Notes under the pieces: generated by a model
Told to the model about the DNA's origin: nothing
What the model saw: only the letters and a program-made list of their open reading frames with translations
Databases searched by the model: none
Part shown: positions 7,652 through 59,529 of the stretch, piece by piece
Layout of the letters: the number at the start of each line of letters is the position of its first letter
Numbering within the stretch: the stretch's first letter is position 1
Made by a program: the position numbers and the translations under genes
From: Trichosphaerium sp. ATCC 40318
Lineage: Eukaryota; Protista; Tubulinea
Direction: 5' to 3'
Length of the DNA stretch: 64,000 nt
NCBI GenBank assembly: GCA_038496445.1
Contig: JALMLS010000453.1
Span: forward strand, 233,875 to 297,874

Positions 7652-9549
7652 TGTTGAAGAGATACTTGTGCTGTTTTGTGTTGGAATAATTAATGTATTG
7701 TTCACAAGTCCAGGAACTAGCGTCGCTACCAAAGTGTGTACATATCACTGAGCGCCGTCATGGCATTTTCTTATTACTATCGCGAGCATATAAGAAATTC
7801 GCCTGTAAATAGCTTGGGTTGCGAATATGTTATCGTCGAATATTTTTTGTTTAAAACACTGTATGAAAGCGATACAAGGCCAATAAATAAGTTGTCTGAA
7901 GTAGCTTTCTTTATATCGCTGTATTTGCGACATTGCCTCTTGTGGCCATATAATCATAAGTATACTGTTGATAGAACATTGTTTGATATTCCTTTTCCAC
8001 TCACAATATATATTCTGCTTTCTGTGGTCTCTGTACGCGCGAATTGAGTTATTCTGTAATAACGCTAAAAACCTGCCAAATCATTTATGGAATCTCTTGG
8101 CCTTACAGGCGCATGTTCTGTTTTTTCTGAAATCACGTGCGCAATGTATAGTGCAGCGCACTTCGGCAGGCGAATCTGATGGTTGGAAAAACGCGAAATT
8201 GGCCGAAAGTGTAAATAAATAACCTCATTTTTTGCGCGTAGACTTGTACAACTTTGCTATCGTATCCTACATTAAATTAGAAAGCTTGTGTGGGCTTTTA
8301 ACAAAATGGTAGTTCGACAAAGGAAAAAAATACGGTAATAAGTAGTCGCTATAATAATAAGTAGTACCATGCCTGTAAAGAGGCGCCAAAAGGGTTTTTT
8401 AGGATCACGTGACAAACATCAGGTATTTTTTTTTTTTTACACAAAGTAAGCCGTTATGGCATTGTTCTTTGTGACTTGTAGAGCTCCAAGTTGGCTGAGA
8501 AGCGAGTGGTAACCACCTTGACAAAAAAAGTTAGTTCGAGGTTAAAAACACTCAGGAGATACTATTTGTAGTTCCGTTTTGGAAGCTGGGCAAAAGCAAA
8601 CTCTAACGTAGTCTATTTTGAAGGCCTTTAGACAAAAATTTTGGTGTTTGTAAAGAGTTTTAGCCAAATACGCGAACGTACGTGTGGACATCATAATAGT
8701 CGTTGTCTCTTATCGCAGTCGGCCTGTAAGACGTAACAAGCTACCAATAGTTTCCTACAATAAGATATTAAGCCAAGAGTGTGGAGTGTTGAATGAGAAG
8801 AAGGAGAAGCTGTTTTTGTAAGTAATATTAACCACAAAATAAAAAGTACACACAACTTGTAACGACTAGCGTGCTAGCTTTTATACTAATATAACGTACG
8901 CCCAGGTCACAGGCATAGACGAAGGTACGTTTTACCATTTAAAACGCACAACTAACAAAAAAGAAAATGCCATACATACAAACTTCATCTAATGAAGTAC
9001 GGAGATGTGTTGATTTGTTGGGTGAATTAGCTTTGTTTAAATCGCTGTATTTACGACACAGCCGTCTTATATACGTACAATATGGTGGAACCTTATACGA
9101 CACAATCTATTGTTGTGCTATACCATTGTTTTCCAGAATACTTAGCGTTGTCCGAATTTCGTTTTAAGTTGGCAAAACAATCACGTGATTTTTTTTTCGA
9201 AATCAATAACAAAGCTCGCACATCCGCAAATACATGGCGAAAGCAATCAAGCTAAATGTTGCTGTCATAATTATTGAATACCAAGACCGAAGCTACGTGA
9301 ACTGAGCATGATTCGCCAGCCTCATGCGACTTTATTAATGAATACAGTTTCTCTTTCTTTGATTTTATACAAGGGCATGATTGTCTTTGCATAGCTGTAG
9401 GTAGACGTCCTTATATGACAGCCATGACGCTACTTACACTAAACATGTATTTTTAGGTGCTAATATAGTGCACATACCAACTACCCTGTGACAAAAAGAG
9501 GCAAACGTAGAACTGCTTCGAACGCTGTTTATTTTGTGCTATTGGCTCA

Positions 9550-12643: not shown

Positions 12644-13796
12644 CTATGATTGGTCTGTTAACTCTGTGTCTGGTTCAGATGAATTCCAGTCTTGCGATGC
12701 AAGTTCGTATGAATTTCCATCTTCCTTTTTCCTCATCTTTCTGGCAATCTAAAATGTAGTTAGAATACACTCAATTTTACCACTAAAATACAGTAAAAAG
12801 CATAACTCATATTACAAACGGCATAGTTAATTTCAGAAAGAAGAACGAATGCAAACATTTTCGGATCGTTAACGATAAAAAAAATCATAAAGAACTCTTT
12901 GCTTACAGCATAGATTATCATAGCAAGAGCAATTCCGAGAGCAATACCCATAACGCCTGTAAGTATTATAACTATAACCCATATACTTATCCCATTCGCT
13001 GATGGCTGGGTGCCTTCAGAGCAAATTTTATAATTCTCCTAAGTTGCTATGTTATTTGTAGGTAAGTCGTAAAAAAACTTCTAAAAACAGCGTAGCATTG
13101 CGCGTGTTAACGACTTGCCATTATAATGCACCCTGGTCTATCTACCGTGCTAGGAATAGCAGGGGATTTATGCGTAATACAAGTGATCTCTTCAGCCTAA
13201 AACAAACATTTAAACTACGCACGTGCCTGTAAAACCTAGAATCACGTGACAAATTCAAAAAACGAAACGGTATCGAAAAAAAAAAAAGTATCGGTTTACC
13301 GTAGTGTCTATCGTCTTTCCTATTACTACTGCATCGTATACGCCCAAATACGATAAAGAGTAAACTCCAGAAGCTCCTGTAGCATAAAACAGTATTTTTT
13401 GTCCTTTCGTAACGGCATTTAGACAATCACCGCTACCAACGCCATGAGAAGAGAACCCAGATACCTAACACAATCCAAAAACAAATTAACATAAGCACTA
13501 AATTAAAACATACACGCACAGTTATTTCTTCGGCTGTACATCCTTTGTAAAGCTCTACGACGGATAATAAAGCAGTTGCTTCGAATCGACTTGATGTATT
13601 TACGGAAACAACCGTTGCTAAGCCAATAACTGTCGCTTTGTTTACGCGATCCTTTGTGGTATAATGAGGCGCTAGTAATGCTATCACAAACGAGGAAAAA
13701 CATTGTAGTTCTGCTAAGGACAATGTACATACCGTTATGAGGAGGTCTACAAGATAATACATAAGCAACCAATAACAAGATACCAAAGGCACGCAT
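12644..13796 (-). CDS. Type I membrane protein with an NtA (N-terminal agrin)/TIMP-like OB-fold ectodomain
   Basis: Spliced: signal MRAFGILLLVAYVLS, mature CRPPHN..TTKDRVNKATVIGLATVVSV..ALLSVVELYKGC..ITVSGF..GDCLNAVTKGQKILFYA. This follows the NtA pattern V..YLKG...V.SGF...C.N.V..G...IFF. TM ISMGIVIILTGVMGIALGIALAMIIYA; short tail ending ELTDQS*. Confidence 0.7.
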
Positions 13797-15165
13797 TCGA
13801 AGGATTTGTGGTTCTTTTTCGTTGTAGTCTATTCTAGTCTCACGAGCAAGAAAAATACCTATGATGTGCGAAGCTTCTAATATCCTTACAGTCCCACGCT
13901 AAACCAAAACCCAGTGTTGGTCCAATACTGAGTATCAACTACGACCACCCTTTCCTATCTAACACTTCTACAAAAATTACCTACATGCCCAAACCAGATA
14001 TGCACTTTCCAGCAAGTCCGCTTCACAATTTGTGTAGGAATTGAAATTTCCTAATCTAGCGTCAATAAAGTATCGAAGAATACAGTCAACAAACTTACAG
14101 AATTTTATCCTAAATCGGATAGATAATCGTTGTTGCCTCTGGTAGTGTTAAAGGGCGGTCTTGGCTTGATTATCAATTACTGCAATAACAATCACAATTT
14201 ATGAATGTTATCCAGCCGTTATCACCTAGTGGTTGCAGCGATAAAAAAGAACGACTGAGTTTAGAAGTATTAAAAAAAGTTGAAGTATAGATATTTGCAA
14301 TACGCTTACTATAAACGCGGAGGAACCAATTGAAGAACTAGTGTTATCATGCTGAGAAAATTACATAGAAGCCAAGATAGTGGCACACTCGAAAAGCAGT
14401 TCAATACTGTAACAGATCAAAAAGCTAACATACAAAAAACCCTGAAGTAGAGTATGGAATCAACGGGGCTAGAGGCTTACTACCAATGCGCTTTTATTCT
14501 AGGATCGCCTATCCTTATCAATGGCACTACTAGAGCAACTGTCCTAATCATTGAGTATTGATCGCTGCTAACGTGACATTATTTCAACTTGTAAAACCAG
14601 AAAATCAGAAAAGCAATTTACCTCTATAATCTCTCCTTTTAACTGTAACAAAACTTGTTAACCTCTTTGATATCGAACATGTATCTACTCACATTGATAG
14701 TATTTTCAAATGAAACGCGATGAAAGTAAACCAGCTAACTTGAAGTTTTATTTTATCTTTTTTTCGAGTAGTTCGCGCGAACTTGGTTTCTCCAAGTTCA
14801 TCTTAAGAAATTGCGTTTAGATACTTATCTGATCCATTGATAACTTTAGTGTCTTTTTATCACTTTCACTAGATTTCTCGTCATTTTATTTTAACCAATA
14901 CACAAAAATGAGATCACAAAAGTTTCCTGCTTTCTTGCTAGAATTTGAACTGTATCGACTTGCCTACTTTTAGAAGCCAATTCAAGAGCTACGGTACTTC
15001 CGTTATATTGTGAGGTGAAACCACATTAAACTGGGTACACTAAAAAAGCTGGTGAATTTTTGTCTGTTTTCAGTATGCCTACACTCTAGAGAATACAATT
15101 TAACTAACAAATTCTATAGCCCTAGCATCGCAGTACTATGAACCAGCAACGTTTTACCTCAAAGT

Positions 15166-15250: not shown

Positions 15251-15715
15251 GCGCACGTGATTATTTCGGAAAACATTAGCTTCCATCATTGAACTACTTG
15301 TAGCTTTAAACGTATTTTCGGGTTATCTCAGTTCGTATTTATATCCGTAGTACTTCACATTCTTGTGAGTGGAAAAGGGAATATCAAACAATCTTGTATC
15401 AATAGGATATATATTGATTATAGGCAATAAGAGACGGTGTTGCAAATACAGCGGTTTAAACAAAGCTAAGTCACCCAACAAAGTAACACTTTTCTTTTCG
15501 TCTAAAATTACCTCTGGAGCCTTTTTAGGTGTTCTTCTAATCGCAGTTAGTTAAGGCAAATTCTATGCCTGCTCGCTGTTTTAACGAAACCGTCAAAACA
15601 TCGTTCATTGCTGATTGTATGTGTGCTGTTTGCGCTAGCTCGCTAGCTCTTGAAGCATCGTGAACTTTTTTTATTATTATAATAGCACAACACCAGCATC
15701 TCATCTCGTTCAAAA

Positions 15716-18700
15716 ATGTTGAGACTCTTGGCTTTTTGTCTTGTTGTGGTATTGGTTTCCTGTTACGAGCAGGCATACTGGGATAGAGTCAATGATTATG
15801 ACGTTGCCTTTAAAAGTACGTTTCGAGTTATATTTAGGCATTGTATTTGCTTTTTTATTCCAGAAAAACCATTTATTTTATTGCAAGATAAGTTTCACGT
15901 ACAAGCTGTTGTATTTAACATCATCCTCTAGTGGATCTATCTCCAGCACGCTTCTCGAAGCGCAGTGGTGGTATTGAAAGACGTTTCGTAATCCATAAAG
16001 CGAACAATGAAAAGAAAGTATTCCGAGTCAGATCTTATTCTGTGTTTGGTACTGGTGCCGAGGTAAGTTCTCGTGATAGCATCTTGCTCGAAAAAGCTTT
16101 TCCATTTTAGCTACAATTTCTCTTTAGTAAAAGCCAAACCGATTGTTAACACTGTATTGTAGATTGAAGTACAAGTCAATGGAACAATTACAAGTTATCC
16201 TCCTCCCACAAACGGATACAAGGGTATTGGAAGCAATCACCAAGATCTTCGTTTTATTGCTCATGAGGATGGTACCTTCTCAGGTGCTTTTGTCATTAAT
16301 GGCGATAGAGTTGTATTTGACCTTGCTTCTAAGTACGCCAATTTTTGCATTGTCACGTGCTTTTAACTTTCTATTTTTTGTTTTCTTAACAAACTGTTTT
16401 TGGTTTTTTTTAAACAAAATGGCTCCCCACGTGACTTTTCGCGCGCATGTAGTGTTAAATATCACGCTTTCGCCGTGGGATATACAAAATCAAATTGAGT
16501 TTTCTCGCTGGTCGAATTAGAAATTTACCGTTTTCTTAGCCACAAGTCTTTTATGAGCAAGAGACATGTAGAAAAGCTCGCTGAAGGGAAATACGTACTC
16601 ATCAGGTACTGACTATTTATGACACAACCAACCAGCTCTAACTTCTTTTTTTAGAGAAAGCATGATGGATCCAGACCCACAGGATTATTCATGCGGTAGT
16701 GGAGAACATAAACATAGTGCTGTACCAAAGAGGTAACATACCAACCATTACCTACTTTGCATTTTGTGTTTATTTGTTTCTTTATAGGATGGTAGAAGAC
16801 CAATCAATAGTGCCACGTTTGACATCTGTAGCACCTTCTCCTTGTCCTCAAACAAATAAACAATTGTTGCAAGTAAGTTACCCCTTTGGTTATATTTAGG
16901 ATTAGTTTTAAAATACGTTTTAGGCTGTTATTACAGATGCTGGGTTTGTTGCAAAGTTGGGTGGAAGACAACCGGCGATTGACTTCATTAATCAAAGTAC
17001 TTTATTTTCGTTGTTCTGCTGTACGTTGTTGATTTTTAACTTAGTATGGATGGACATGAACGTGTACTATGAGAGAGAATTTGTACGCTTTACAACTTTA
17101 TTCCTTTTTAAGAATAGTTGTATTCGACCTGGTCTTTTTCTTCTTTGTTTTTTTTATATCTACTAATGTGCAAATGTAGAATGTTCATCTCACAATTGAA
17201 TCCCTTCAAATCAACGAATCACCTGGCGGTCCAAACTGGAATACCCTTGGTGGTAACAGTTGTCCTAGTATCGAAACAAAACTAGATCAAGTCTCGACAT
17301 GGAAACAAGACAACAAACCTGATGCAGGTCTTCTTCATCTCATGACAAACTGTTATCCATCTCCCGGTACAGTAGGATATGCTTGGCGGGGTGTGCTTTG
17401 TAGAAGGGTACATAAAAACGAAACTTTAGCTCACTTTGCTTTTTTTTGTTGTGGTCGATTAATACTCTATTATTAGACTGGTGCAGCTGTTTCAAATCAT
17501 TTGAATAGTCGACATTCAGCTCATCGTATTGTGGGCCACGAAACTGGTCACAACTTTGGTTGCCCACATGACGACGGTAATGGAGGTAAGCCATACTCCA
17601 ACTAGCCAGCTTCAAGATAAACAGTTAATTTTTAGGTATTATGTTTCCAAGTGTAAACAACAGAGTGTACGTTCTCTTTTTGAAACTCACTTCTTGTATT
17701 TTTTGATTTACCTTTTGTTAACACTACTTTATTTAGTTCAACGGACTATGATCGGTTCTCCCAAGTTAGTATTGGTCAAGCTTGTGCTCATATCAGTTCA
17801 ATTAATTGCCTTCTCGATTATGACTCAGGATGTACTGTTTCTTGTGGAACAAAAGAATGTGGTCCAAGTAACTGTGTTGGAAGGTCATGTGGATTCTGTC
17901 AAGGGCTTAACGAATGTAAGAATGGGCAATGTGTTCCATGTGATCAACAATGCGGTACCAAAGAATGTGGTCCAGACGCTTGCGGTAACAGCGACGGTTG
18001 TGGTACTTGTGATTCAGGAAGTCAATGTAGAAATGATAAGTGTGAGGTTATACCTCCATTTCCTCAAGATGTTCTTCAAGTTGTAAATGATGAAAGGTAC
18101 TTAGACTTTTAAATTCTGTGTTGCGAAGCTGTTTTCTAGGTGTTCAATCTTTTTGTAGATCTTTGTATGGTCTTAATGCGGTTGAATGGGACACAGATTT
18201 ACTTTCTCAAGTTAATGAATACTTGGCTACTTGCAACGAAAACCTGAAACGTTCTTCAATTGGTGGCGATATAAACGAAAATGGTAATAGTGAGTTTAAC
18301 ATCGCTGGTGAACTTGCCAAGATAATAAAGCAAAAACCTTTGTGGACTTGCGAAACTGATGTAATTGATACATCTGATAGTAATGCAAATTACTACATAT
18401 GGAGATACAAGTACGTACAAAGCCTCAAACAACAATTTACTTTTATTATGAATCTAATTCTGAATCTAACATTTTATTTGCAAGGATCATTGTTTCTGAC
18501 AGGCAGACCAAAATGGCATGTAGCCAACGTCAATGTGGTGATAGACATCTAATGTATTGTGCATTTTCTCGATTCCAAGGTTACAACACAAGACCGTTCC
18601 CTGAAGATCAGTGTAGTAAGTAAAAAAAAAACTACAACAGTTTGATAGTATTTCACTAATAATGAATAGACTTTGAATGCACAAATACACGTAATCCAAA

Positions 18701-20927
18701 CGTCTGTACAGAACGAGGAAAGAATTGTGGTTCTGCTTTTGATGGATGTGAAAATATTCCTTGTGGATCTTGTAGTGGTCCAAACACGTGCTCTTCTGAA
18801 GGTAACCTTCTATTTTTTTGTGAGTTGTGGTCGCTTACTTTTGTACAGGTCGTTGTGAGTGTATTCCATCCAATACTTGTTCTGGAGCTTGTGGTATGCT
18901 TAATGACGGATGTGGAACTACTCTCGATTGCGGAAATTGCCAGGCAGGCCAAGAATGTGAAAATAATCTTTGTGTTACACCGTATGATCAACCAAAAGTG
19001 TAGTTCGATTAATACTAAAACTGTATTTAGACCACCTGATCCACTCACACCCGCAGAATGTGATGAACTTTGTACAACAAGAAATATTGAGTGTGGTGGC
19101 GTTACTGAATGTCCTGGACATGTTTGTGGTGATTGTGTAAGTGGTGAAATGTGTTCAAACTTCCAATGTGTCACATGTCAAGGATGTCATGCTCAAGCGA
19201 CATGTGATCTATCTGGCTCAACTCCACAATGTAAATGCGTAACTGGATACGAAGGAGATGGAAGAGACTGCAACCCAAAACCTATCAATGAGAAACCATC
19301 TTTTAAAACGTTTAAAATAGGATCAGATGCCAATTGGAGGTAACTAACATGGTTTGGGTTTTTTAAGCAATACTTGTTCACAAAATCACGTGTGTTCTTA
19401 TTTCCTTTCTCAAGAATATTTCAAGAAGGCGCTATCAAGAATTCTATTGATTTAGTAAACGCACCAAGTCCACATTGCATCCGATGGGAAGGGTACGTTT
19501 TAGCTTTTAGCTGTTTCAACTATTGTTCAATGTTCTAACTTTGGGATTAACTTTATTCGTAGTACTGAAGAAATCCTTCCTGGTGGTACCATGACTATTG
19601 GTGTATCTGTTCTAAGAAGCGATGAAACCACTTTTGCTGCTATTGGATATGGGTAGGTGTTGAGTAACAGAATAGGCTTTGTTTATTGATTTATCTCTCT
19701 AGTATGGGTAATACACAATTCCCAGACGCTATACTGATGTTGTATATCGAACCTGAGAGTAGTACCCAAATGAGAGTTGGTCAAACATACTACTGGGGAC
19801 AACGTGTATGAAAAAAAGTAGAAAGACGGGTTTTGAGACGTGTAACTGTTTCATAGGGCTCATTGGATTACCGAACTGTAGATTGGGCAGTGGGCGAGTG
19901 GAAAGATATTACAATGTCAGTGGAAGCTGATGGCGGAACACGAACCCGAACTACTATCGCTGGAACTAACTTCGTATGCTACAAAACAAACCCAAATTGT
20001 CATCTAATGTCTTCTTTGTAAAAAGGTCTATGATTACACATACAATGTCAACCCAGACGGCGGTGCTGTTGGTTTTTGTGGTCAAGGTTCTGCTTTCTTT
20101 AAGGATGTTTTACTCCTTACAGAGTCAAAACTTGAGTTTGTTATTTCCGGTTGTCCATCAGAAGAATTTGTGCGACAACGTCTCAAGACAATGCTTGGTA
20201 TCACAGATGATCAACTTTCAGATATGACCTTGGTTGGCTCTGGATGTACTTCAACGAAAAGACAAGCCGCTGCAGGTGCAACAACAGCTGTTTCAGTGAC
20301 TGTTGTTGGTACTAAGAGTGTATCTTCAATATCAATTGTTTCGAATCTACAGAACATCATCACATCTGGCTCAAACATTGCTTCTGCAAGTGGTATTGTT
20401 CCTTCATCAAGTAAGTGAACATATTTTATTTACAGTAAACGACAACTAACTTTTTGACTAGTTGCGGTGTCGTCTGTACCTGTTGCTGCTGCAACTCCAG
20501 CTGTAGCTGTTACTGCAGTTGGTGGTGCTGGTGCAGCCGCTGCTTCTGGTGGTCTTGGTGCTGGCGCTATTGCCGGTATCGCTGTAGGATCTGTTGTCGG
20601 TATTGCTGTTGTAGCTGCTGCGATTGGTGGAGTAGTTTACGCCTCAAAGAAACAAGATGTTCATGTACGTAGAAGGCAGAAGAGAGTTATACATTCCCTT
20701 TAATTTCGTTTCTTATTGGCTTGTGCTATGATTTGTTCTTACATATTCTTGTTTAGACTTCTGATACACCTCAATCGAATACTTCTCCAGGTGTAACAAT
20801 GTCAAATGATACCAAACAAGAAGATGCTGCTGCGAGAGATGGTGTTAACGTGATGGGAGGTCCAAAAAGACCAGATGGACCTTCTATTACTGCTAGAAAT
20901 CAAAACGTTGTTGTAAGTCCAAATTGA
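15716..20927 (+). CDS. Membrane-anchored M12B metalloprotease-CAP-Cys-rich-EGF protein, copy 2
   Basis: Same exon structure as copy 1. HETGHNFGCPHD, Met-turn GIMFP. Spliced frame open from MLRLLAFCLVVVLVS to VVVSPN*. Confidence 0.9.
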
Positions 20928-21354
20928 GGATAGACAGACAAACTAGAACAGATCCAGATTAGCTGACTGTACTTTCATACCAATCACAATAAATCAGTAT
21001 TGCATTATTCTTAACAACTTTTCAGTTTCTTGTTGTAAACGCAACACGAGTACTTAACCAAGTGCTACAGAATAATTAGTTATATATCGCTCTAGCGTTG
21101 CACCTCGGAACTCAGGTTTCGAATCTAAGATCTTGCCTGAATAGCCTCATGTTACACTCACATAACTACTCAAATCATCTCTGATTTATACAGTGTTGGT
21201 TTTATAACAGAAATGTATTTTGAGCGGATCTCAGCAGGAACTTGACGTCTAAATCTTGTGAATCTAATTTGAAATATTTCGTAGAATCCATAGTGTGATA
21301 ATGAAAAGTATGTATAGAAGATAAGCATGTATTCTATTTTTATAATGTGATACT

Positions 21355-21780
21355 TCTTTATTGTGAATGCTATGGAGGTACATGATAATCTGTAGTCTTC
21401 AATTTGGACTTACAACACAATTTTGAGTTCTAGTAGCAGTTGAAGGTACATCTGGTTTTTTGGGATATTGATCATGGTGTTGTAAGTCCAAATTGAGGAC
21501 ATTTCACATTCACGTAGTAGCATGTTTTCTTTGGTATCACTTGACACTGTTGTACTTGTGGATAATCGATTGAATCGTCTAAGAAGGCTAAACAAGCAAC
21601 GTATGTAAGAACAGAATAGACATATCATAATCTCCTCTTCTTTTTTACGTACATAAATATCCTATTTCTGCATCCTATACCAATCACAGCAACAATCTCG
21701 AAAGCCGATGTAGCAATACTGGCAATAGCGCTGGCACCAGAACACCAGAGGCAGCGACTATACCGGCAACAGCAGTGATA
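21355..21780 (-). pseudogene. Degenerate inverted relic of the protease gene's 3' end (TM exon, last intron, last exon, 3' UTR)
   Basis: Reverse-complement similarity to ~20510-20995, e.g. GGCAATAGCGCTGGCACCAGAACACCAGAGGCAGCG and TATGTAAGAACA; many substitutions and indels. Confidence 0.85.
21395..21500. ncRNA. Candidate miRNA-like hairpin A
   Basis: Arms 21395-21418 GTCTTCAATTTGGACTTACAACAC and 21477-21500 GTGTTGTAAGTCCAAATTGAGGAC form a 24 bp stem (one G:U) with a 58 nt loop. Expression is not shown. Confidence 0.5.
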
Positions 21781-22881
21781 TAAACATTTTAAAGATTCAC
21801 TCACGTGGACCACAGGCTCACGTAAATGATAATTTGTTTCAAATGAAACATGGCGAAGTTCTGAATTTGGTTACAAACGTAGAATTTTAAGTTTTATGTT
21901 AAAACTCGGCCCGAGTATTTAGAGGAACTCAGTGTCAAAAATGTATCCTGATAAAATTGTCTTGACAGCAATATCTGAACCATTGATAGCTTTTCATGCC
22001 TTTGTATTACTTTCACTAGATTTCTCGTCATTTTTTTTGCAGCACTACAAAAAATGGGATTCAAAAGTTTCCGCGTTATAGAATTTGAGGCGTATTGAAC
22101 TGCCTACTATTCAATGTTCTAGAAGCTGTAACGGAACAGTTGTAACATTGATATATGTAAGAGCTATGGTACTTCCGCTATATTGTGAGCTGAAACCACA
22201 TTAAACTGGGTACACTAAAAAAGCGGAAAGGATTTATTGTAGCCTACATTCCAGATTACCAATAAAGTAAAATCTTTTACAGTGGATTTTTGTCTCGCAT
22301 TCATAGCCTGCACTTTGGAGAAATAACAACTTACACCCTTCATGGTAAGCACTATTTTTGCTATTGGTTTACAAACAAAACAGACTCGCCTGTAAACGGT
22401 GTAGGTTCACATACCGCAAACTGTGGCACTTTAATTCATGCTAAATTGAGTTTTGTGCTTTTGCACGTGATTTGTTTAGCATTGAAATATTTGTAGCGTT
22501 AAACATATTCTACGGTTATCTCAGTTCATAGTGATAGCCGAATGAAGTATACGTCACATTATTGTGAGTGGAAAAGGGAATATCAAGATTGTTTGTATCA
22601 ACATGATATATATTGATTATAGTGGCAATAAGAGACGGTGTTGCAAATACAGCGATTTAAACAAAGCTAAGTCACCCAACAAACGTGCATACACAAACTT
22701 TTCTCTGGCTTCTAATCATAGTTAGTTGAGGCAAACTCAATGCCTGCTCGCGGTTTTAACAAAGCCGTCAAAACATCTTACATTGCTTTTTGTGTATGTG
22801 TACGGTTTGCGCTAGCTCGCTAGCACTTGAAATCTCGTGAACTTTTTAACATAGCACATAACTAGCATCCTATCTTCAACA

Positions 22882-25800
22882 ATGCTGCGCCTCTTGTCTT
22901 TGGCTTTATGTCTTATTGTGGTAATGGTTTCGTGTTACGAACAGGCATATTGGGATAGAGTCAATGATTATGAGGTTGCCATTAAAAGTATGTTTCGAGT
23001 TTTGTTTCAACCACATACTTGCTTTTTTCTTTACCATGTCCAAAAAACCAAAACGAACTGTTATTGCAAGATACGTACAAGCCGGTGTATTGATTTTAAT
23101 CTTCTATTGTAGTGCATCTATCTCCAGCACGCTTCTCAAAGCGTAGTGGTGGCATTGAAAGACGTTTCGTGATCCATAAAGCGAACAATGAAAAGAAAGT
23201 ATTCCGAGTAAGATCGTATTCTGTGTTTGGTCCTGATGCAGAGGTAAGTTCTCGTGATAGCATCTTGCTCGAAAAAGCTTTTCCATTTTAGCTACAATTT
23301 CTCTTTAGTAAAAGCCAAACCGATTGTTAACACTGTATTGTAGATTGAAGTACAAGTCAATGGAACAATTACGAGTTATCCTCCTCCCACAAACGGATAC
23401 AAGGGTATTGGAAGCAATCACCAAGATCTTCGTTTTATCGCTCATGAGGATGGTACCTTCTCAGGTGCTTTTGTCATTAATGGCGATAGAGTTGTATTTG
23501 ACCTTGCTTCGAAGTACGTACAATTTTTGTGCTGTCATGTACTTTTTTTTCAAAATATTGTTTATTGTTCTGTAACGAAGCATCGGATGAAGCATACTTA
23601 CCTCGTTTTTAGCCACAAATCATTTATGAGCAAGAGACATGTAGAAAAGCTTGCTGAAGGGAAATATGTACTCATCAGGTACTGACTATTTTTGACACAA
23701 AACCAACCAGCTCTAACATCTTTTTTTAGAGAAAGCATGATGGATCCAGACCCACAGGATTATTCATGCGGCAGTGGAGAACATAAACATAGCGCTGTAC
23801 CTAAGAGGTAATATAAACCAAGCTGGCATACTTGCATGTTTATTCTCCCTAGGATGGTTGAAGACCAATCAATAGTGCCACGTTTGACATCTGTAGCACC
23901 TTCTCCTTGTCCTCAAACAAATAAGCAATTGTTGCAAGTAAGCTACCCTTGGTTTATTTAAGATTAGTTTTAAAATACGTTTTAGGCTGTTATTACAGAT
24001 GCTGGATTTGTTGCAAAGTTGGGTGGAAGACAACCAGCGATTGACCAAATTAATCAAAGTAACTTTTTTCTTTGTCCATGTTATTGATTTTTAACTTAGT
24101 ATGGATGGACATGAACGTGTACTATGAGAGAGATTTGGTGCGGTTTCTTCAGAATTTCTTGTATGCCTACTGATGCAAAATGTAGAATGTTCATCTCACA
24201 ATTGATTCCCTCCAAATCAATGAATCACCTGGCGGTCCAAACTGGAATACACTTGATAGCAATTGTCCTAATATAAGCATAAAACTGGATCAAGTCTCGG
24301 CATGGAAACAAGACAACAAACCTGATGCAGGTCTTATTCATCTCATGACAAACTGTTATGAGTTAAAGAATGTTGAAAGCGGTATAGTTGGACGGGCTTG
24401 GAACAGTGCACTATGCAGAAGGGTACGCATACAAAAATTCGTATAATTTCAGTTGTTGTTTTAAACATCAATAACATTGTGCTAGATGTATGGTGCAGGT
24501 GTTTCAAATCACTTGACTAGTCGACACACAGCTCATCGTATTGTTGGTCATGAGATTGGTCACAACTTTGGTTGCAATCATGATGAAGCTAATGGAGGTA
24601 CGACAACTTAAAAACAATCCACAACCAAACAATTCTTTCCAGGTATCTTGTTTCCAGATGTAAACCAAAGACCGTACGTTTCACTTTTACTGCCGATTTT
24701 TGAGGTAACATTCTGTAGTTCAACGGAATACGATCGGTTTTCCCAATTTAGTATTGGTCAAGCTTGTAGCCTTATCAGTTCAATTAGTTGCCTTGTCGAT
24801 TATGACTCAGGATGTACTGTTTCTTGTGGAACAAAAGAATGTGGACCAAGTAACTGTGTTGGAAGGCTATGCGGTCTGTCAAGGTCTTAACGAATGCAAG
24901 AATGGACAATGTGTTCCATGTGATCAACAATGCGGTACCAAAGAATGTGGTCCAGACGCTTGCGGTAACAGCGACGGTTGTGGTACTTGTGATTCAGGAA
25001 GTCAATGTAGAAATGATAAGTGTGAGGTTATACCTCCATTTCCTCAAGATGTTCTTCAAGTTGTAAATGATGAAAGGTACTTAGACTTTTAAATTCTGTG
25101 TTGCGAAGCTGTTTTCTAGGTGTTCAATCTTTTTGTAGATCTTTGTATGGTCTTAATGCTGTTGAATGGGACACAGATTTACTTTCCCAAGTTAATGAAT
25201 ATTTGGCGACTTGCACCGAAAACCGAAAACGTCCTTCAATTGGTGGCGATATAAACAAAAATGGTAATAGTGAGTTTAACATTGCTGGTGAACTTGCCAC
25301 GATGATAGAGAAAAAACATTTATGGACTTGCGAAACTGATGTAATTGATACATCTGATAGTAATGCAATTTACTACATATGGCGATACAAGTACGTACAA
25401 AGCCTCAAAGCCATCTTCTTTTTTTTCATTTTGAATCTAACATTTTTATTTGCAAGGATCATTGTTTCTGACAGCCAGACCAAAATGGCATGTAGCCAAC
25501 GCCAATGTGGTGACAGACACCTCATGTATTGTGCATTCACTCGATTCCAAAATTACGACGAAAGACCATTTCCTAAAGATCAGTGTAGTAAGTAACAAAA
25601 AAACTACAACAGCTTGTAGTATTTCATTCTAATAATGAATAGACTTTGAATGCACAAATACACGTAATCCAAACGTTTGTACAGAACGAGGACAGAATTG
25701 TGGTTCTGCTTTTGATGGATGTGAAGATGTTTCTTGCGGATCTTGTAGTGGTCCAAACACGTGCTCTTCTGAAGGTAGACAACATTCTTTTATAGTTTTG

Positions 25801-27882
25801 ATTGGTTACTTTTGCACAGGTCGTTGTGAGTGTACTCCATCCAATACTTGTTCTGGAGCTTGTGGTATGCTTAACGACGGATGTGGAACTACTCTCAATT
25901 GCGGAAATTGTTCAGCAGGCCAAGAATGTGAAAATAATCTTTGTGTTACACCGTATGATCAACCAAAAGTGTAGTTCGATTAATACTAAAACTGTATTTA
26001 GACCACCTGATCCACTCACACCCGCAGAATGTGATGAACTTTGTACAACAAGAAACATTGAGTGTGGTGGCGTTACTGAATGTCCTGGACATATTTGTGG
26101 TGCTTGTGTAAGTGGTGAAATGTGTTCAAACTTCCAATGTGTCACATGTCAAGGGTGTCATGCTCAAGCGACATGTGATCTATCTGGCTCATCTCCACAA
26201 TGTAAATGTGTCACTGGATACGAAGGAGATGGAATAGACTGCAACCCAAAACCTATCAATGAGAAACCATCTTTTAAAACGTTTAAAATAGGATCGGATG
26301 CCAATTGGAGGTAACGGTTTTTAAGCAATCTTATTTGCAAAATCACGTGTTCTATTTCTTACTTTTTTTCTTTTTTCAAGAATATTTCAAGAAGGCGCTA
26401 TCAAGAATTCTATTGATTTAGTAAATGCACCAAGTCCACATTGCATCCGATGGGAAGGGTACGTTTTAGCTTTTAGATGTTTCCACGTTCGAACTTTGAA
26501 ATGTTAACTTTATTCGTAGTACTGAAGAAATCCTTCCTGGTGGTACCATGACTATTGGTGTATCTGTTCTAAGAAGCGATGAAACCACTTTTGCTGCTAT
26601 TGGATATGGGTAAGTGCTGAGTAACAACAGGCTTTGTTTATTGATTTATCTTTGTAGTATGGGTAATACACAATTCCCAGACGCTATACTGATGTTGTAT
26701 ATTGAACCTGAGAGCAGTACCCAAATGAGAGTTGGTCAAACATACTACTGGGGTCGACGTGTACGAAAAAAAGTAGAAAGATGGGTTTTGAGACGTGTAA
26801 CTGTTTCATAGGGCTCATTGGATTACCGAACTGTAGATTGGGCAGTAGGCGAGTGGAAAGATATTACAATGTCAGTGGAAGCTGCTGGCGGAACGCGAAC
26901 CCGAACTAGTATAGGTGGAACTAACTTCGTATGCTATATAACAAACCCAAATTGTCATCTAATGTTTCTTTGTAAAAAGGTCTATGATTACACATACAAT
27001 GTCAACCCAGACGGCGGTGCTGTTGGTTTTTGTGGTCAAGGTTCTGCTTTCTTTAAGGACGTTTTACTCCTTACAGAGTCAAAACTTGAGTTTGTTATTT
27101 CCGGTTGTCCAACAGAAGAATTTGTGCGACAACGTCTCAAGACAATGCTTGGTATCACAGATGATCAACTTTCAGATATGACCTTAGTTGGCTCTGGATG
27201 TACTACAACGAAAAGACAAGCCGTTGCAGGTGCAACAACAGCTGTTTCAGTGACTGTTGTTGGTACTAAGAGTGTATCTTCAATATCAATTGTTTCGAAT
27301 CTACAGAACATCATCACATCCGGCTCAAACATTGCTTCTGCAAGTGGTATTGTTCCTTCATCAAGTACGGGAAACTATATTATTTCACAGTAAAGCTACG
27401 GATAATTAATTATCTGCCTAGTTGTGGTATCGTCTGTACCTGTTGCTGCTGCAACTCCAGCTGTAGCTGTTACTGCAGTTGGTGGTGCTGGTGCAGCCGC
27501 TGCCTCTGGTGGTCTTGGTGCTGGCGCTATTGCCGGTATCGCTGTAGGATCTGTTGTCGGTATTGCTGTTGTAGCTGCTGCAATTGGTGGAGTAGTTTAC
27601 GCCACAAAGAAACAAGATGTTCATGTACGTAATAACAACAAAGCATTTCCTTTTGTTAGAATAATTTGTATTGGCTTGTGCTATGATTTGTTCTTACATA
27701 TTCTTGTTTAGACTTCTGATACACCTCAATCGAATACTTCTCCAGGTGTAACAATGTCAAATGATACCAAACAAGAAGATGCTGCTGCGAGAGATGGTGT
27801 TAACGTGATGGGAGGTCCAAAAAGACCAGATGGACCTTCTATTACTGCTAGAAATCAAAATGTTGTTGTAAGTCCAAATTGA
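22882..27882 (+). CDS. M12B metalloprotease-CAP-Cys-rich-EGF protein, copy 3 (apparent 2-nt frameshift near 24875)
   Basis: HEIGHNFGCNHD, GILFP. TGCGGTCTGT here versus TGCGGAGTCTGT in copy 4 shifts the frame, so this is a pseudogene, truncated product or assembly error. Confidence 0.8.
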
Positions 27883-28454
27883 AGATAGTCAGACAAACTA
27901 GAACAGATCCAGATTAGCTGACTGTACTTTCATACCAATCACAATAAATCAGTATTGCTGCATAATGCTTAACTTTTCAGTTTCTTGCTATAAACGCCAC
28001 ACGAGTAATTAACCAAGTGCTACAGAATCATTAGTTTTTTATCGCTCTAACTACTCAAATCATCTCTGTTTATCCACGTTGGTTTTCTGACAGAAATGTG
28101 TTTTGCGAGGAAATCTCAGCAGGAATTGATGGCTAAATATTGTTGAAACTATTTCGTAGAGTTCAGTGAGACGAAAGTATGTCTAGAAGTGGCTGAAGAA
28201 AAGTTTAAAAGTATGTATCATATTTTGCTACAATACCTTTTTACTCCTTCTTAGCCAGCTTGCCATTACTAAACAGCTTTGGTTGTTTAGGGTACTCTGC
28301 TATGAAAAGCAGTGGTTGTAGGCTACCACGGTCTTCATAGGTATTAGCAATGTTATACTGCAATTTGCTGTGTACTTCTTTATACAATACAGGCTGTGGT
28401 GGCCGTCAACTATATTGTTACAAGAAACATTCAGGTTTGAGATTGTGATAATGC

Positions 28455-28865
28455 TTTATTGTGAATGATATGGAGGTACAAGATAATCTGTAGTCTTCAA
28501 TTTGGACTTACACCACAGTTTTGAGTTCTAGTAGCAATCGAAGTACATCTAAGTTTGGGATCTATATCATGTGCGGTGTTGTAAGTCCAAATTGAGGACA
28601 TTTCATATGATCTCACGAAGCATCTTTCTTTGGTATCGCTTGACTGTTGTACCTGAGAATAATCGATTGAATCGTCTTCGAAGGCTATACAAGCAACTTA
28701 TGTAAGAACAGAATAGACACGTAACATAATCTCTTTTTTACGTACCTAAATATGCGTGCATACTCCGCTTTGCCAATCACAGCAACAATATCGAAAGCCG
28801 ATGTAGCAATACTGGCAATAGCGCTGGCAGCAGACCTCCAGAGGCAGGCAACAGCAGTGATATAG
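28455..28865 (-). pseudogene. Second degenerate inverted relic of the protease 3' end
   Basis: Homologous to 21355-21780. Confidence 0.85.
28493..28599. ncRNA. Candidate miRNA-like hairpin B
   Basis: Arms GTCTTCAATTTGGACTTACA (28493-28512) and TGTAAGTCCAAATTGAGGAC (28580-28599) are identical to the core of hairpin A, while the loop has diverged. Confidence 0.5.
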
Positions 28866-29917
28866 ACATTTTGAAGATTCACTCACGTGGTACCACAGCC
28901 GCTCACGTAAATGATAATTTGTTTCAAATGAAACATGGCAACGCTTAAATGAAGTTCTGAATTTGGCTACAAACCCAGAATTTAAAGTTTTATGTTAAAC
29001 TCGGCCCGAGTTATTTAGAGGAACTCAGTGTCAAAACTACATCCTGATAAAATTGTCTTGACAGCAATATCTGAACCATTGATAGCTTTTAATGTCTTTG
29101 TATAACTTTCACTAGATTTCTCGTCATTTTTTTGCAGCACTACAAAAAATGGGATTCAAAAGTATCCTGCGTTATAGAATTTGAGGTATATTGAACTGAC
29201 TACTGTTCAATGTTCTAGAAGCAATCCGTGCGGTACTTCCGCTATATTGTGAGCTGAAACCACATTAAACTGGGTACACTAAAAAAGCTGGTGAATTTTT
29301 GTCTCGCATTCATAGCCTGCACTTTTGGGAATATTAAATAACAACTTACGCCCTTCATGGTTTGCGAAATAACACTATTTTTGCTGCTGTTTTACAAACA
29401 AACAGACTCGCCTGCCAACGGTGTAGGTTCACATACCGCAACCCGTGGCACTTTAATTCATGCCAAACTGATTTTTGTGCTTTTGCACGTGATTTGTTTA
29501 GCATCCAGCATTGAACTACTTGGGGCATTAACGTATTCTAGGATATCTTGGTTCATAGTGATAGCCTAATACGTATTACGTCACATTCTTGTGAATGGAA
29601 AAGGGAATATCAAACAATCTTGCATCAACAGTATACTTGTGATTATAATGGCACTAAGAGACGGTGCTGGAAATACAGCGGTTTAAAAAAAGCTAAGTCA
29701 CCCAACAAAGGTGCATACACAAACGTTTCTCTGACACCTAATCACAGCTAGCTAAGGCAAATTCTATGTCTGCCCGCGGTTTTAGCAAAGCCGTCAAAAT
29801 ATCTTAGATTGCTTTTGTGCATGTGTACGGTATTCGCTAGCACGCTAGCTCTTGAAATCTCGTGAACCTTTTAACATATTGAAACAATAGCACATAAAGC
29901 GCATCTCATCTTCAACA

Positions 29918-32900
29918 ATGTTGCGCCTCTTGGCTTTGGCTTTATATCTTATTGTGGTAATGGTTTCGTGTTACGAGCAGGCATACTGGGATAGAGTCAA
30001 TGATTATGACGTTGCCATTAAAAGTACATACTTGCTTTTTTCTGTACCATGTTCCAAAAAACCAAAACAAACTGTTTTATTGCAAGATACGTACAAGCCG
30101 GTTCATTGATTTTAACTTTCTATTGTAGTGGATCTATCTCCAGCACGCTTCTCAAAGCGTAGTGGTGGTATTGAAAGACGTTTCGTAATCCATAAAGCGA
30201 ACAATGAAAAGAAAGTATTCCGAGTCAGATCGTATTCTGTGTTTGGTCCTGATGCAGAGGTAAGTTCTCGTGATAGCATCTTGCTCGAAAAAGCTCTTCC
30301 ATTTTAGCCAGAATTTCTCTTTAGTAAGCCAAACCGATTGTTAACACTGTATTGTAGATTGAAGTACAAGTCAATGGAACAATTACAAGTTATCCTCCTC
30401 CCACAAACGGATACAAGGGTATTGGAAGCAATCACCAAGATCTCCGTTTTATCGCTCATGAGGATGGTACCTTCTCAGGTGCTTTTGTTATTGATGGCGA
30501 TAGAGTTGTATTTGACCTTGCTTCGAAGTACGCCAATTTTTGTGTTGTCACGTAATTTTTTAAAGCACGTGATAGGCAACTTTTTTAGTCAATTCTCAAC
30601 TTCGAAAAAAATGTTCTTTATTGTTCCGTACCGACTCGGATGAAGCATACTTACCTCTTTTTTTTAGCCACAAATCATTTATGAACAAGAGACATCTCGA
30701 AAAGCTTGCTGAAGGGAAATACGTACTCATCAGGTGGATAGTAATATGGCAAACCAACCATCTAACTTCTTTTTTAGAGAAAGCATGATGGATCCAGACC
30801 CACAGGATTATTCATGCGGCACTGGAGGTCATACACATAGCGCTATACCTAAGAGGTAACGTAAACCAAGAATGCATACTTGCATGTTTATTCTCCTTAG
30901 GATGGTTGAAGACCAATCAATAGTTCCACGTTTGACATCTGTAGCACCTTCTCCTTGTCCTCGAACAAATAAACAATTGATGCAAGTAAGTTACCCTTAG
31001 TTATATTTAGGATTAGTTTTAAAATACGTTTTAGGCTGTTATTACAGATGCTGGGTTTGTTGCAAAGTTGGGTGGAAGACAACCAGCGATTGACTTCATT
31101 AATCAAAGTACTTTATTTTCGTTGTTCTGCTGTACGTTGTTGATTTAAATTTAGTATGGATGGACATGAACGTGTACTATGAGAGAGATTTTGTGCGTTT
31201 TCTTTGTTATTTCTTGTTTTGCGCACTAATACATTACAATGTAGAACGTTCATCTCACAATTGAATCCCTTCAAATCAATGAATCACCTGGCGGTCCAAA
31301 TTGGAACACACTTGATACCAATTGTCCTGGTATCAGCACAAAACTGGATCAAATCTCGACATGGAAAGAAGACAACAAACCTGATGTAGGTCTTCTTCAT
31401 CTTATGACAAACTGTTATAGTGGTATAGTTGGAAAGGCTTGGATCGGCGTACTATGCAGAACAGTACGTACTAAAATTTTGTATAATTTCATATTTGTTT
31501 TTAACATCAATGTAACATTGCGCTAGGATGGTGCAGCTGTTTCAAATTATTTGGATAGTAGACACGCAGCCCATCGTATTGTTGGTCATGAAATTGGTCA
31601 TAACTTTGGTGGTAATCATGATGAAGCTAATGGAGGTGCGAAAACTTAAAAACAATCCACAACCAAACACTTTTTTCCAGGTATCTTGTTTCCAAGTGTA
31701 AACCATAGACCGTACGTTTCACTGTTACTTGCCGATTTTTGAGGTAACTTTCTGTAGTTCAACGGACTACGATCGGTTTTCCCAATTTAGTATTGGTCAA
31801 GCTTGTGCTCATATCAGTTCAATTAATTGCCTTGCCGATTATAACTCAGGATGTACTGTTTCTTGTGGAACAAAAGAGTGTGGTCCAAGTAACTGTGTTG
31901 GAAGGCTATGCGGAGTCTGTGAAGGGCTTAACGAATGTAAGAATGGGCAATGTGTTCCGTGTGATCAACAATGCGGTACCAAAGAATGTGGTCCAGACGC
32001 TTGCGGTAACAGTGACGGTTGTGGTACTTGTGATTCAGGAAGTCAATGTAGAAATGATAAGTGTGAGGTTATACCTCCATTTCCTCAAGATATTCTTCAA
32101 GTTGTAAATGATGAAAGGTACTCAAAGTGATTTAAGACCTTAAAATCTTATTTTTATTAACACCTTTTTTGTAGAGCTTTGTATGGTCTTAATGCTGTTG
32201 AATGGGACACAGATTTACTTTCCCAAGTTAATGAATACTTGGCTACTTGCAACGAAGACCTGAAACGTTATTCAATTGGTGGCGATATAAACGTAAAAGG
32301 TGATAGTGAGTTTAACATTGCTGGTGAACTTGCCAAGATGTTAGAGAAAAAACGTTTATGGACCTGTGATACTGATGTAATTGGACCATCTTATGATGGT
32401 AATGAAGATTTCTACATATGGCGATACAAGTACGTACAAAGCCTCAAACAACTATTTTTTTTCATTTTGAATCTAACATTTTATTTGCAAGGATCATTGT
32501 TTCTGACAGCCAGACTAAAATGGCATGTAGCCAACGCCAATGTGGTGACAGACACCTCATGTATTGTGCATTCACTAGATTCCAAAATTACGACGAAAGA
32601 CCGTTTCCTAAAGATCAGTGTAGTACGTAACAAAAAAACTACAACAGTTTGATAGTATTTCACTAATAATGAATAGACTTTGAATGCACAAATACCCGTA
32701 ATCCAAATGTCTGTACAGAACGAGGAAAGAATTGTGGTTCTACTTTTGATGGATGTGAAGATATTTCTTGTGGATCTTGTAGTGGTCCAAACACGTGCTC
32801 TTCTGAAGGTAGACAACATTCTTTTATAGTTTTGATTAGTTACTTTTGTACAGGTCGTTGTGAGTGTACTCCATCCAATACTTGTTCTGGAGCTTGTGGT

Positions 32901-34918
32901 ATGCTTAATGACGGATGTGGAACTACTCTCAATTGCGGAAATTGTTCAGCAGGCCAAGAATGTGAAAATAATCTTTGTGTTACGCCGTACGTGGCCACCA
33001 AAAGTGTAGTGTTCGATTAATACTAAAACTGTATTTAGACCACCTGATCCACTCACACCTGCAGAATGTGATGAACTTTGTACAACAAGAAACATTGAGT
33101 GTGGTGGCGTTACTGAATGTCCTGGACATATTTGTGGTGCTTGTGTAAGTGGTGAAATGTGTTCAAACTTCCAATGTGTCACATGTCAAGGATGTCATGC
33201 TCAAGCGACATGTGATCTATCTGGCTCAACTCCACAATGTAAATGCGTCACTGGATACGAAGGAGATGGAATAGACTGCAACCCAAAACCTATCAATGAG
33301 AAACCATCTTTTAAAACGTTTAAAATAGGATCAGATGCCAATTGGAGGTAACGGTTTTTAAGCAATCTTATTTGCAAAATCACGTGTTCTATTTCTTACT
33401 TTTTTTCTTTTTTCAAGAATATTTCAAGAAGGCGCTATCAAGAATTCTATTGATTTAGTAAACGCACCAAGTCCACATTGCATCCGATGGGAAGGGTACG
33501 TTTTAGCTTTTAGATGTTTCCACGTTTGAACGTTGAAATATTAACTTTATTCGTAGTACTGAAGAAATCCTTCCTGGTGGTACCATGACTATTGGTGTAT
33601 CTGTTCTAAGAAGTGATGAAACCACTTTTGCTGCTATTGGATATGGGTAAGTGTTGAGTAACAACAGGCTTGGTTTATTGATTTATCTTTGTAGTATGGG
33701 TAATACACAATACCCAGACGCTATACTGATGGTATACATTGAACCTGAGAGCAGCACCCAAATGAGAGTTGGTCAAACATACTACTGGGGTCGAAATCGC
33801 GTAAGGAGGAAGAAAGTCTTGAGGAGGTTTTTAAGAGTTAACTGTTTTATAGGGCTCATTGAATTACCGAACTGTAGATTGGGCAGTAGGCGAGTGGAAA
33901 GATATTACAATGTCAGTGGAAGCTGCTGGCGGAACGCGAACCCGAACTAGTATAGGCGGAACTAACTTCGTATGCTATAACAAACCCAAATTGTCATCTA
34001 ATGTTTCTTTGTAAAGGTCTATGATTACACATACAATGTCAACCCAGATGGCGGTGCTGTTGGATTTTGCGGTCAAGGTTCTGCTTTCTTTAAGGATGTT
34101 TTACTCCTTACAGAGTCAAAACTTGAGTTTGTTATTTCCGGTTGTCCATCAGAAGAATTTGTGCGACAACGTCTCAAGAATGCTTGGTATCACAGATGAT
34201 CAACTTTCAGATATGACCTTGGTTGGCTCTGGATGTACTTCATCAAAAAGACAAGCCGCTGCAGGTGCAACAACAGCTGTTTCAGTGACTGTTGTTGGTA
34301 CTAAGAGTGTATCTTCAATATCAATTGTTTCGAATCTACAGAACATCATCACATCTGGCTCAAACATTGCTTCTGCAAGTGGTATTGTTCCTTCATCAAG
34401 TACGGAAAACTATATTATTTCACAGTAAATCTACGGATAATTAATTATCTGCCTAGTTGCGGTATCGTCTGTACCTGTTGCTGCTGCAACTCCAGCTGTA
34501 GCTGTTACTGCAGTTGGTGGTGCTGGCGCAGCCGCTGCCTCTAGTGGTCTTGGTGCTGGCGCTATTGCCGGTATCGCTGTAGGATCTGTTGTCGGTATTG
34601 CTGTTGTAGCTGCTGCAATTGGTGGAGTAGTTTATGCAACAAAGAAACAAGATGTTCATGTACGTAGAAGGAATAAAGCATTTCCTTTTGTTAGAATAGT
34701 TTGTATTGGCTTTGTGCTATGATTTGTTCTTACATATTCTTGTTTAGACTTCTGACACACCTCAATCGAATACTTCTCCAGGTGTAACAATGTCAAATGA
34801 TACCAAGCAAGAAGATACTGCCACGAGAGATGGCGTTAACGTGATGGGAGGTCCAAAAAGACCAGATGGACCTTCTATTACTGCTAGAAATCAAAACGTT
34901 ATTGTAAGTCCAAATTGA
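29918..34918 (+). CDS. M12B metalloprotease-CAP-Cys-rich-EGF protein, copy 4 (apparent 2-nt frameshift near 34178)
   Basis: HEIGHNFGGNHD, GILFP. CTCAAGAATGCTT here versus CTCAAGACAATGCTT in copies 2 and 3. Confidence 0.8.
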
Positions 34919-52485: not shown

Positions 52486-52823
52486 CTTTACCGTTAAACA
52501 GTTAGCGAGAACTACAATTTCGCTGAATCTGTTTTATTTAGTTGTATTTTAAATACTACAATTGACTGATTGATTGACACGCTACTGATTTAACTAGTTT
52601 GTTGTTATTTCTTCTCTTACACCAAAAGATCTCGAGGTGTCCACGTGATAGTTACTTTTATTGACCGTTACATAGCTTGATTATTACATGTCACAGGTGA
52701 TAATTACAGTGTTTTGCACAAATGTGCAACTATTTTTTCAATTACATTGACAACTGATAGATTCTCTCCTCCAATCTAGTAGTGTTGCACTTGCAGAACA
52801 AGTGAATCTAACATGATTAGTTT

Positions 52824-59378: not shown

Positions 59379-59529
59379 CAGCTTAAATCAAATGACATCT
59401 CCTTTCTTTGTCAACTACAGCTATGGCAGCAATGCCAACAAACTCAAGCGGTAACTCTTCAGTAAAAATTCGTTTACGATAGCATAACCTTGACCACTAT
59501 AAGCATTCGTCAAAATAAGAAAGTTAATT

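Follow-up and report, generated by a model that had tools for sequence, protein, structure and literature searches.

Between the tandem copies of a protease gene lies an inverted repeat (21395-21500) that can be folded as RNA into a hairpin, one arm of which is complementary to the genes around it. Is it a small-RNA gene that sets the dosage of the family from which it was derived, as an earlier note on this DNA had proposed, or is it the trace of a rearrangement of the DNA between the genes? In what follows, the window is the whole stretch of DNA that was analysed (64 kb), and positions refer to it unless a contig is named.

Organization of the protease gene cluster

The window is eukaryotic and intron-rich, with a G+C content of ~38%, and it contains a protease gene of roughly 5 kb four times, as three direct tandem repeats and one inverted copy. 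The direct repeats make up a tandem array of three units with a period of ~7 kb (14737-35004). The gene copies are as follows.

2575 to ~7650, minus strand: gene copy 1, inverted
15716-20927, plus strand: gene copy 2, an intron-rich gene for an ADAM/reprolysin-like membrane metalloprotease
~22882-27882, plus strand: gene copy 3, in the tandem array
~29918-34918, plus strand: gene copy 4, in the tandem array

The domains of the gene were read exon by exon. The metzincin motif HExGHNFGxxHD is found in copies 2-4, the active-site exon matches Reprolysin_4/5, and further exons encode an EGF-like domain and a single TM segment; on these grounds 'ADAM-like membrane metalloprotease' is a suitable name for the gene. 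The last codons of copy 2 read V-S-P-N-stop, and the stop of the gene is followed by a well conserved AATAAA, with plus-strand signals at 20988 (copy 2) and 27943 (copy 3). We considered whether the GTAAGT contained in the 17-mer across the stop codon might be the 5' splice site of an extra intron, and rejected this as the sequence after the candidate acceptor is not conserved among the paralogues; a plain stop codon followed by AATAAA is the simpler reading.

Two paralogues lie outside the window, at C26:339351-339805 and C43:65775-66318. Their tails are 87% and 77% identical overall, and even in the 77% paralogue the last ~25 codons are ~95% identical at the nucleotide level. Downstream of either paralogue there is no relic or hairpin of the kind described below. 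Relatives of the last exon, sought in metagenome contigs, and of the EGF-like exon, sought in genome contigs, were not found.

The four copies in the window are 88-93% identical across the last-exon region, and identity between copies is mosaic, with stretches of 99% beside others of 62-76%. In the last intron, copy 2 resembles the inverted copy 1 and copy 3 resembles copy 4. The mosaic identity and these pairings together show gene conversion, or homogenisation, at work in the cluster, and the mosaic across the array suggests gene conversion plus fast divergence near the catalytic site. At a finer scale, the segment 17895-18194 is 99% identical to copy 3, yet 76% to copy 4, and 17478-17679, in the region of the active-site exon, is just 62% identical to copy 3.

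Two other repeats were observed in the window. Copies of a short dispersed repeat, 80-89% identical, occur at 22560-22683, 7891-8008 (minus strand), 9014-9070 (minus strand), 15369-15554 and 29548-29751, which places them partly upstream of protease genes and partly at other points in the stretch from copy 1 to copy 2; this repeat holds a recurrent small ORF ending ...KRRCCKYSGLNKAKSPNK. Further along, a 305-nt inverted repeat (52819-53123 and 59079-59383), whose arms are 98% complementary and 6 kb apart, is probably an inverted gene-copy pair near EF-1alpha-like genes.

Inverted relics of the gene's 3' end in the array spacers

The two array spacers each contain one relic, ~440 nt in size and antisense to the 3' end of the gene.

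21338-21774, minus strand: relic A, in which the 3' end of the ADAM-like gene survives as an inverted pseudogene fragment
28436-28847, minus strand: relic B, paralogue of relic A in the next spacer

What remains of the gene in the relics is part of the TM exon, the last intron, splice sites included, and the last exon down to the stop codon, followed by a shortened 3' UTR and an AATAAA, a minus-strand signal at 21357 in relic A and at 28455 in relic B. At the DNA level they are 62-70% identical to the genes, and relic B is 82-84% identical to relic A. The relic belongs to the repeat unit, which means that it is older than the duplication that gave rise to spacers A and B. Nothing similar to the relic or its hairpin follows copy 4 or copy 1.

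Two descriptions of the relics were considered and set aside. The first, a live small gene, is contradicted by the absence of an ATG and of a signal peptide, by the reading frame of relic A, which shifts after the 24-nt insert described below, and by the C-terminal reading, which differs between relics A and B. Six ORFs over the relics, looked up exactly in a protein collection, gave no match and no called protein. The second, a sharp shared breakpoint at which the end of the relic, the end of the unit and the poly(A) site coincide, does not agree with the homology past the poly(A) site, which fades gradually, nor with copy 1, which shares some of the flank.

The ~330-nt spacer at 21010-21341 is unique, without another copy in the genome. 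Elsewhere, spacers A and B have in common blocks of 37-57 nt that are 100% identical (79% otherwise), at 21698-21736, 21945-21994, 22032-22068 and 22168-22224, and the segment 21972-22224 is also common to the region upstream of copy 2 (14826-15049). Such blocks may serve the gene copies downstream as promoter or regulatory elements, or they may be conversion patches.

A hairpin within each relic

Each relic contains a hairpin, the parts of which are arranged as follows.

21395-21418, plus strand: 5' arm of hairpin A, which is the stop-codon region of the relic itself and runs antisense to the protease mRNAs
21419-21476, plus strand: loop of hairpin A, 58 nt, an antisense relic of the gene's last ~20 codons
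21477-21500, plus strand: 3' arm of hairpin A, an added 24-nt piece in sense orientation
28493-28516, plus strand: 5' arm of hairpin B, in which one A-to-C change relative to A breaks a pair
28576-28599, plus strand: 3' arm of hairpin B, identical to that of hairpin A

Folding recovered the 24-bp stem that the earlier note had described at 21395-21500: hairpin A, 106 nt in total length, forms 24 consecutive pairs including one G.U, its arms being 23/24 complementary as DNA, with a ΔG of -46.7 kcal/mol and a z-score of -7.5 (0/200 shuffles equal). The stem persists when it is folded in a 401-nt context. The claim that a stem is retained at 28493-28599 around a different loop also held, as hairpin B consists of 20 bp, one mismatch and 3 bp (ΔG -39.8, z -4.75), and both loop and flanks differ between A and B. 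Both hairpins thus fold better than their shuffles; folding was one of the checks that had been proposed for them. When the minus strand is folded, the z-scores of the two hairpins are -5.8 and -5.6. The stem of 24 bp has no lower stem beneath it, and an upper helix predicted in A is absent from B.

Apart from two small overlapping palindromes (56256-56285 and 12858-12883), hairpins A and B are the sole local inverted repeats of at least 18 nt with a spacing of at most 150 nt in the 64 kb. Across the 70-Mb genome the hairpin was found only in the two array spacers, which argues that it is not a mobile element; a MITE or foldback transposon was rejected on this count (just two copies, both in array spacers) and on the derivation of the loop from the last exon of the gene. 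A search of Rfam gave no match, either at the gathering score or with E values as high as 1 allowed, and no tRNAs were found.

Proposed origin of the hairpin by a template switch

The earlier note had described a decayed antisense relic of the gene's 3' end to which a sense-oriented piece of ~24 nt had been added, and this description is confirmed by an eight-way alignment of the six gene tails with the two reverse-complemented relics, in which the six paralogues serve as an approximation of the ancestor. Both relics carry 24 nt in place of 11 nt of the six genes and are collinear with them, in antisense, on either side. Reverse-complemented, the 24-nt piece matches the stop-codon region of the relic itself, which lies 58 nt away, and there is a possible 3-nt microhomology, AAC, at the return junction. 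Extended homology to the genes is limited to the 5' arm, the loop and the right flank. We therefore rejected an inverted-duplication proto-MIR, in which both arms would come from the target: the homology of the 3' arm extends over just 22-24 nt.

The piece might instead have been copied directly from the stop region of the upstream gene, and here the arms themselves are informative. The base at the inner end of the stem is G in all four arms and T in all six genes; since the arms share this derived G, taking the relic's own arm as the source requires one step fewer than insertion from a gene. The relic's own arm is thus favoured by one step as the putative source, and direct copying from the upstream gene is one step less parsimonious. 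Of the later changes, a C-to-T in the 5' arm, which makes the G.U pair, is common to A and B, and the A-to-C is private to B.

We propose that a replication template switch of the quasi-palindrome type copied the adjoining stretch of the relic in inverted orientation, which would have produced a perfect 24-bp stem in one step, and that a tandem duplication of the entire unit afterwards gave hairpins A and B. Preservation of the arms thereafter would be due to chance, patchy gene conversion and/or repeated arm-to-arm template switching. Function as a small RNA would not be required at any of these steps, and the stem would nonetheless be a Dicer substrate if the spacer were transcribed. As a sequence history, this origin, from inverted relic through short template switch to tandem duplication, is well supported. 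After control for composition there is no strand-asymmetric transition bias.

In primates, more than 6,000 template-switch hairpins have given rise to at least 18 miRNA genes, the promoter being limiting (PMC10710096); the majority of hairpins made by template-switch mutations (TSMs) remain without function, and a few of those located in transcribed DNA turn into miRNA genes (PMC10710096). Weighing the evidence in this and the following sections, we consider that the hairpin is probably a scar of DNA rearrangement, one that folds well as an RNA hairpin and could in principle serve as a small-RNA precursor. The template-switch scar that had been named beforehand as the alternative to a small-RNA controller seems at least as well supported as the controller.

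Complementarity to the stop codons is inherited

A 17-mer that spans the stop codon has eight matches in the window, against 0.07 expected, at the four gene stop codons and in the four hairpin arms; one mismatch to it is present in the 5' arm of hairpin B, and the other arms are exact. The sites in the genes are as follows.

2575-2591, minus strand: 17-mer across the stop of copy 1, after which there is no relic
20911-20927, plus strand: 17-mer across the stop of copy 2
27866-27882, plus strand: 17-mer across the stop of copy 3
34902-34918, plus strand: 17-mer across the stop of copy 4, after which there is no relic

With exact sites at all four stop codons, the arm is complementary to the stop region of copies 1-4, as had been claimed. 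Elsewhere in the 70-Mb genome the only occurrences of the 17-mer, apart from one chance match, are at the stop codons of the C26 and C43 paralogues, each with one mismatch. In hairpin A, the 5' arm is an exact complement of the gene stop region over 19 nt, or over 23 nt with G.U pairs, and the 3' arm is identical to the stop region of the genes for 22 nt; over its full 24 nt the arm shows 1-3 differences from the genes. No other run of identity between relic and gene is as long as the 19-22 nt of the stop-region arm, for which a column shuffle gives P ~0.001-0.006, a value that is overstated as rate heterogeneity is ignored.

What does this complementarity say about function? The copies are so similar in the last exon, and homogenised there, that 50% of its 17-nt windows are invariant across all four. 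Since half of the windows would thus match every copy, and since the arm is the relic's own stop region, complementarity by itself is uninformative on function. The exact match to four copies is real, but it supports function more weakly than the earlier note supposed: on these comparisons, complementarity to the four genes is inherited and is not evidence of function.

Conservation of the arms

The two arms differ between A and B at 1 of 48 positions, and the rest of the relic at ~21%. Identity between A and B is 88% in the left flank, 71-84% in the right flank and 79% over the 1.8-kb spacer as a whole; in the loop it is 67% when counted by columns and ~81% by events. A naive Poisson calculation gives P ~0.002 for conservation of the arms. 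Because identity along the spacer is very heterogeneous, an empirical, window-based joint P for both arms comes to ~0.01-0.03: among 24-column windows of the spacer alignment, 5-8% are identical at 24/24 positions and 16-19% at 23/24 or better. The alignment of the 1.8-kb spacers contains 13 perfect runs of at least 24 nt, three of them within the relic and two of these three being the arms, and there are, besides the arms, 11 equally conserved blocks. Moreover, the conservation was noticed post hoc, and hairpins with decayed arms would have escaped flagging. The sole substitution since the duplication, the A-to-C in B, breaks a pair and is uncompensated, and no compensatory change is present.

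As to the expectation that the stem would be better conserved than its flanks, the arms have diverged less than the remainder of the relic, but the excess of conservation is marginal (P ~0.01-0.03). We regard the conservation as a signal that is real but modest. The 3' arm lies in a 31-nt identity island with indels on both sides, which seems to fit repeated template switching, or selection, better than ordinary conversion; template switching between imperfect inverted-repeat arms is described as able to homogenise them (PMC13100816).

Conserved arms might also be explained if the inverted repeat acted as DNA, for instance by binding a dimeric factor, by insulating the tandem genes from one another or by pausing replication between them. 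There is one copy per spacer, the arms are conserved, and promoter transcription factors of yeast use inverted repeats made by template switching (PMC13100816). The arm spacing of 58 nt is long for a dimer site, however, the motif has no other copies outside the gene family, and nothing specific speaks in favour of a DNA-level role, which we consider very improbable.

Could the hairpin be a small-RNA gene?

The enzymes that a small-RNA gene would depend on are encoded in this genome. An Argonaute locus with PAZ and Piwi domains lies at C37:385235-387255 and a second copy at C549:4784-6460; the Dicer-like locus on C34 has a PAZ and two RNase III domains. The suggested check for Dicer and Argonaute thus came out positive for both. 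The genome also has other RNase III genes, and RdRPs are encoded at no fewer than five loci. The PAZ matches of the two Argonaute loci score the same (41.7 bits) and the Piwi matches score 39.7 on C37 and 24.2 on C549; C549, a small contig where C37 is a large one, may hold an uncollapsed haplotype or a recent duplicate.

With this machinery, the local hairpin could be a small-RNA gene, young and under selection, of the miRNA-like or the hairpin-siRNA kind. A plus-strand transcript of the spacer, from read-through of the gene or from a start of its own, would fold, Dicer would free a single duplex of ~21-24 nt, and the strand from the 5' arm would guide Argonaute to the stop region of four (or six) protease mRNAs. 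RdRPs may amplify the response, and with one hairpin per spacer the dose of the regulator would track the dose of the gene. Several observations agree with such a gene: the hairpin is strong and present in two copies, its arms are 47/48 identical against ~79% for the rest of the relic, and, when read on the plus strand, A departs from Watson-Crick pairing at a single position, a G.U. That strand has no AATAAA between 20988 and 22200 (27943-29264 for B), and a read-through RNA would therefore cover the hairpin. On the minus strand, the AATAAA of the relic lies ~40 nt beyond the hairpin, and a transcript of either strand would give one arm antisense to the mRNA. The route of its birth also agrees with MEPIDAS and template-switch models (10.1101/682591; PMC10710096).

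The same evidence bears on the scar that we prefer, and some of it does so adversely. Arms that differ at a single position within a relic that has otherwise diverged by about a fifth sit uneasily with a scar, a gene-conversion island of 24 nt is mechanistically awkward, the stop-region arm is the longest run of identity to the genes, and the 3' arm lies in the 31-nt island. The presence of complete RNAi machinery, including the Argonaute, Dicer-like and RdRP loci, likewise counts for a small RNA and against a scar. So does the size of the hairpin: amoebozoan miRNAs (Edelbroek et al., 2024, PMC11014262) are mostly lineage-specific, young and intergenic, have plant-like precursors of 75-125 nt, a range that includes the 106 nt of hairpin A, and need Dicer and Argonaute.

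Against a selected small-RNA gene, the stem measures just 24 bp and lacks a lower stem, and B does not retain the upper helix of A. The only substitution since the duplication broke a pair and was not compensated, the conservation is marginal and was recognized post hoc, and there is no wobble or transition bias. No Rfam family covers the hairpin, and few template-switch hairpins become miRNA genes (PMC10710096). On balance we consider a small-RNA gene in the local hairpin unlikely.

Alternatively, the whole relic might be the functional unit and the short hairpin incidental to it. Transcripts of copies 2 and 3 that read through would fold back so that the relic pairs with the last exon and 3' UTR of the same RNA; the long, imperfect foldback, a hairpin of the classical inverted-duplication type, would yield heterogeneous siRNAs or destabilise the read-through RNA. 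When 20850-21560 is folded as one RNA, the duplex of gene tail and relic is indeed the minimum-energy fold (ΔG -216.7, z -9.2, 20 shuffles); in it, the 5' arm pairs with the stop region of the gene and not with the 3' arm, so that the foldback competes with the local stem, and the unique ~330-nt spacer at 21010-21341 forms its loop. RdRP, Dicer and Argonaute are available for this route as well. It needs, however, read-through beyond a well conserved AATAAA, and gene and relic are 62-70% identical as DNA, so that only the stop region contains perfect stretches as long as a Dicer product. Changes compatible with wobble pairing are not in excess: the raw count for the gene-tail/relic duplex, 50 G.U-type against 29 A.C-type (p 0.02), suggests a bias, and this is gone in gene-invariant columns normalised for composition, where there is no sequence sign of selection on the duplex. 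Such a role for the whole relic seems to us quite unlikely. Small-RNA function of either kind, by the local hairpin or by the read-through foldback, is doubtful when the two are taken together.

Significance and comparison with known systems

A target-derived small-RNA gene newly born in an amoeba, with one template switch having made the relic an autonomous Dicer substrate, strikes us as improbable, and the consequences would be considerable if it were real. The dose of silencing would scale with gene copy number, as there is one hairpin per spacer, and this would be the first documented case, beyond plants and animals, of a miRNA-like regulator arising from the gene that it targets, with two known birth routes combined. 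Were the hairpin processed, a small-RNA gene would have been caught at birth, its parent, relic, stem mutation and targets all within 20 kb, in a lineage with undocumented miRNA origins. Were it not, the locus would be a clean example of how relics at array junctions and template switching provide raw material for such genes, and of how a hairpin can become perfectly complementary to a gene family without having any function.

Plant MIR genes were reportedly traced by Allen et al. in 2004 to inverted duplication of their targets. In mouse oocytes, pseudogene siRNAs, and in Drosophila, hpRNAs, come from inverted or antisense pseudogene copies that give dsRNA silencing the parent family. Those hairpins extend over hundreds of bp and have been proven by sequencing, whereas the perfect stem described here measures 24 bp and the foldback is 62-70% identical.

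As in plant MIR genes and the MEPIDAS model, an antisense copy of the target combined with a partial inverted duplication has produced a stem-loop that is linked to the target and has one arm antisense to it (PMC3237417; 10.1101/682591). The locus differs from plant MIR genes in that extended homology is found in one arm and the loop, the other arm being a bare 24-nt copy, and in that the host of this putative precursor is an amoeba-like protist. The miRNAs of Amoebozoa, as described in the part of PMC11014262 used here, are defined by small-RNA sequencing with precise 5p and 3p products, which sets them apart from the candidate precursor described here; an origin from target genes is not reported in that part of the study (PMC11014262).

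The closest likeness is to TSM hairpins and the miRNA genes born from them (Monttinen, Frilander and Loytynoja, 2023, PMC10710096), in which the same single inverted-copy event replaces a few bases and leaves a perfect stem. Two features set the present case apart from those hairpins: what was copied is a pseudogene relic whose parent gene is multi-copy, so that the hairpin was born complementary to a family, and the ancestral state is deduced from paralogues and not from an outgroup genome. The hairpin falls within the known kinds of template-switch and of pseudogene- or target-derived hairpins and is not a new category.
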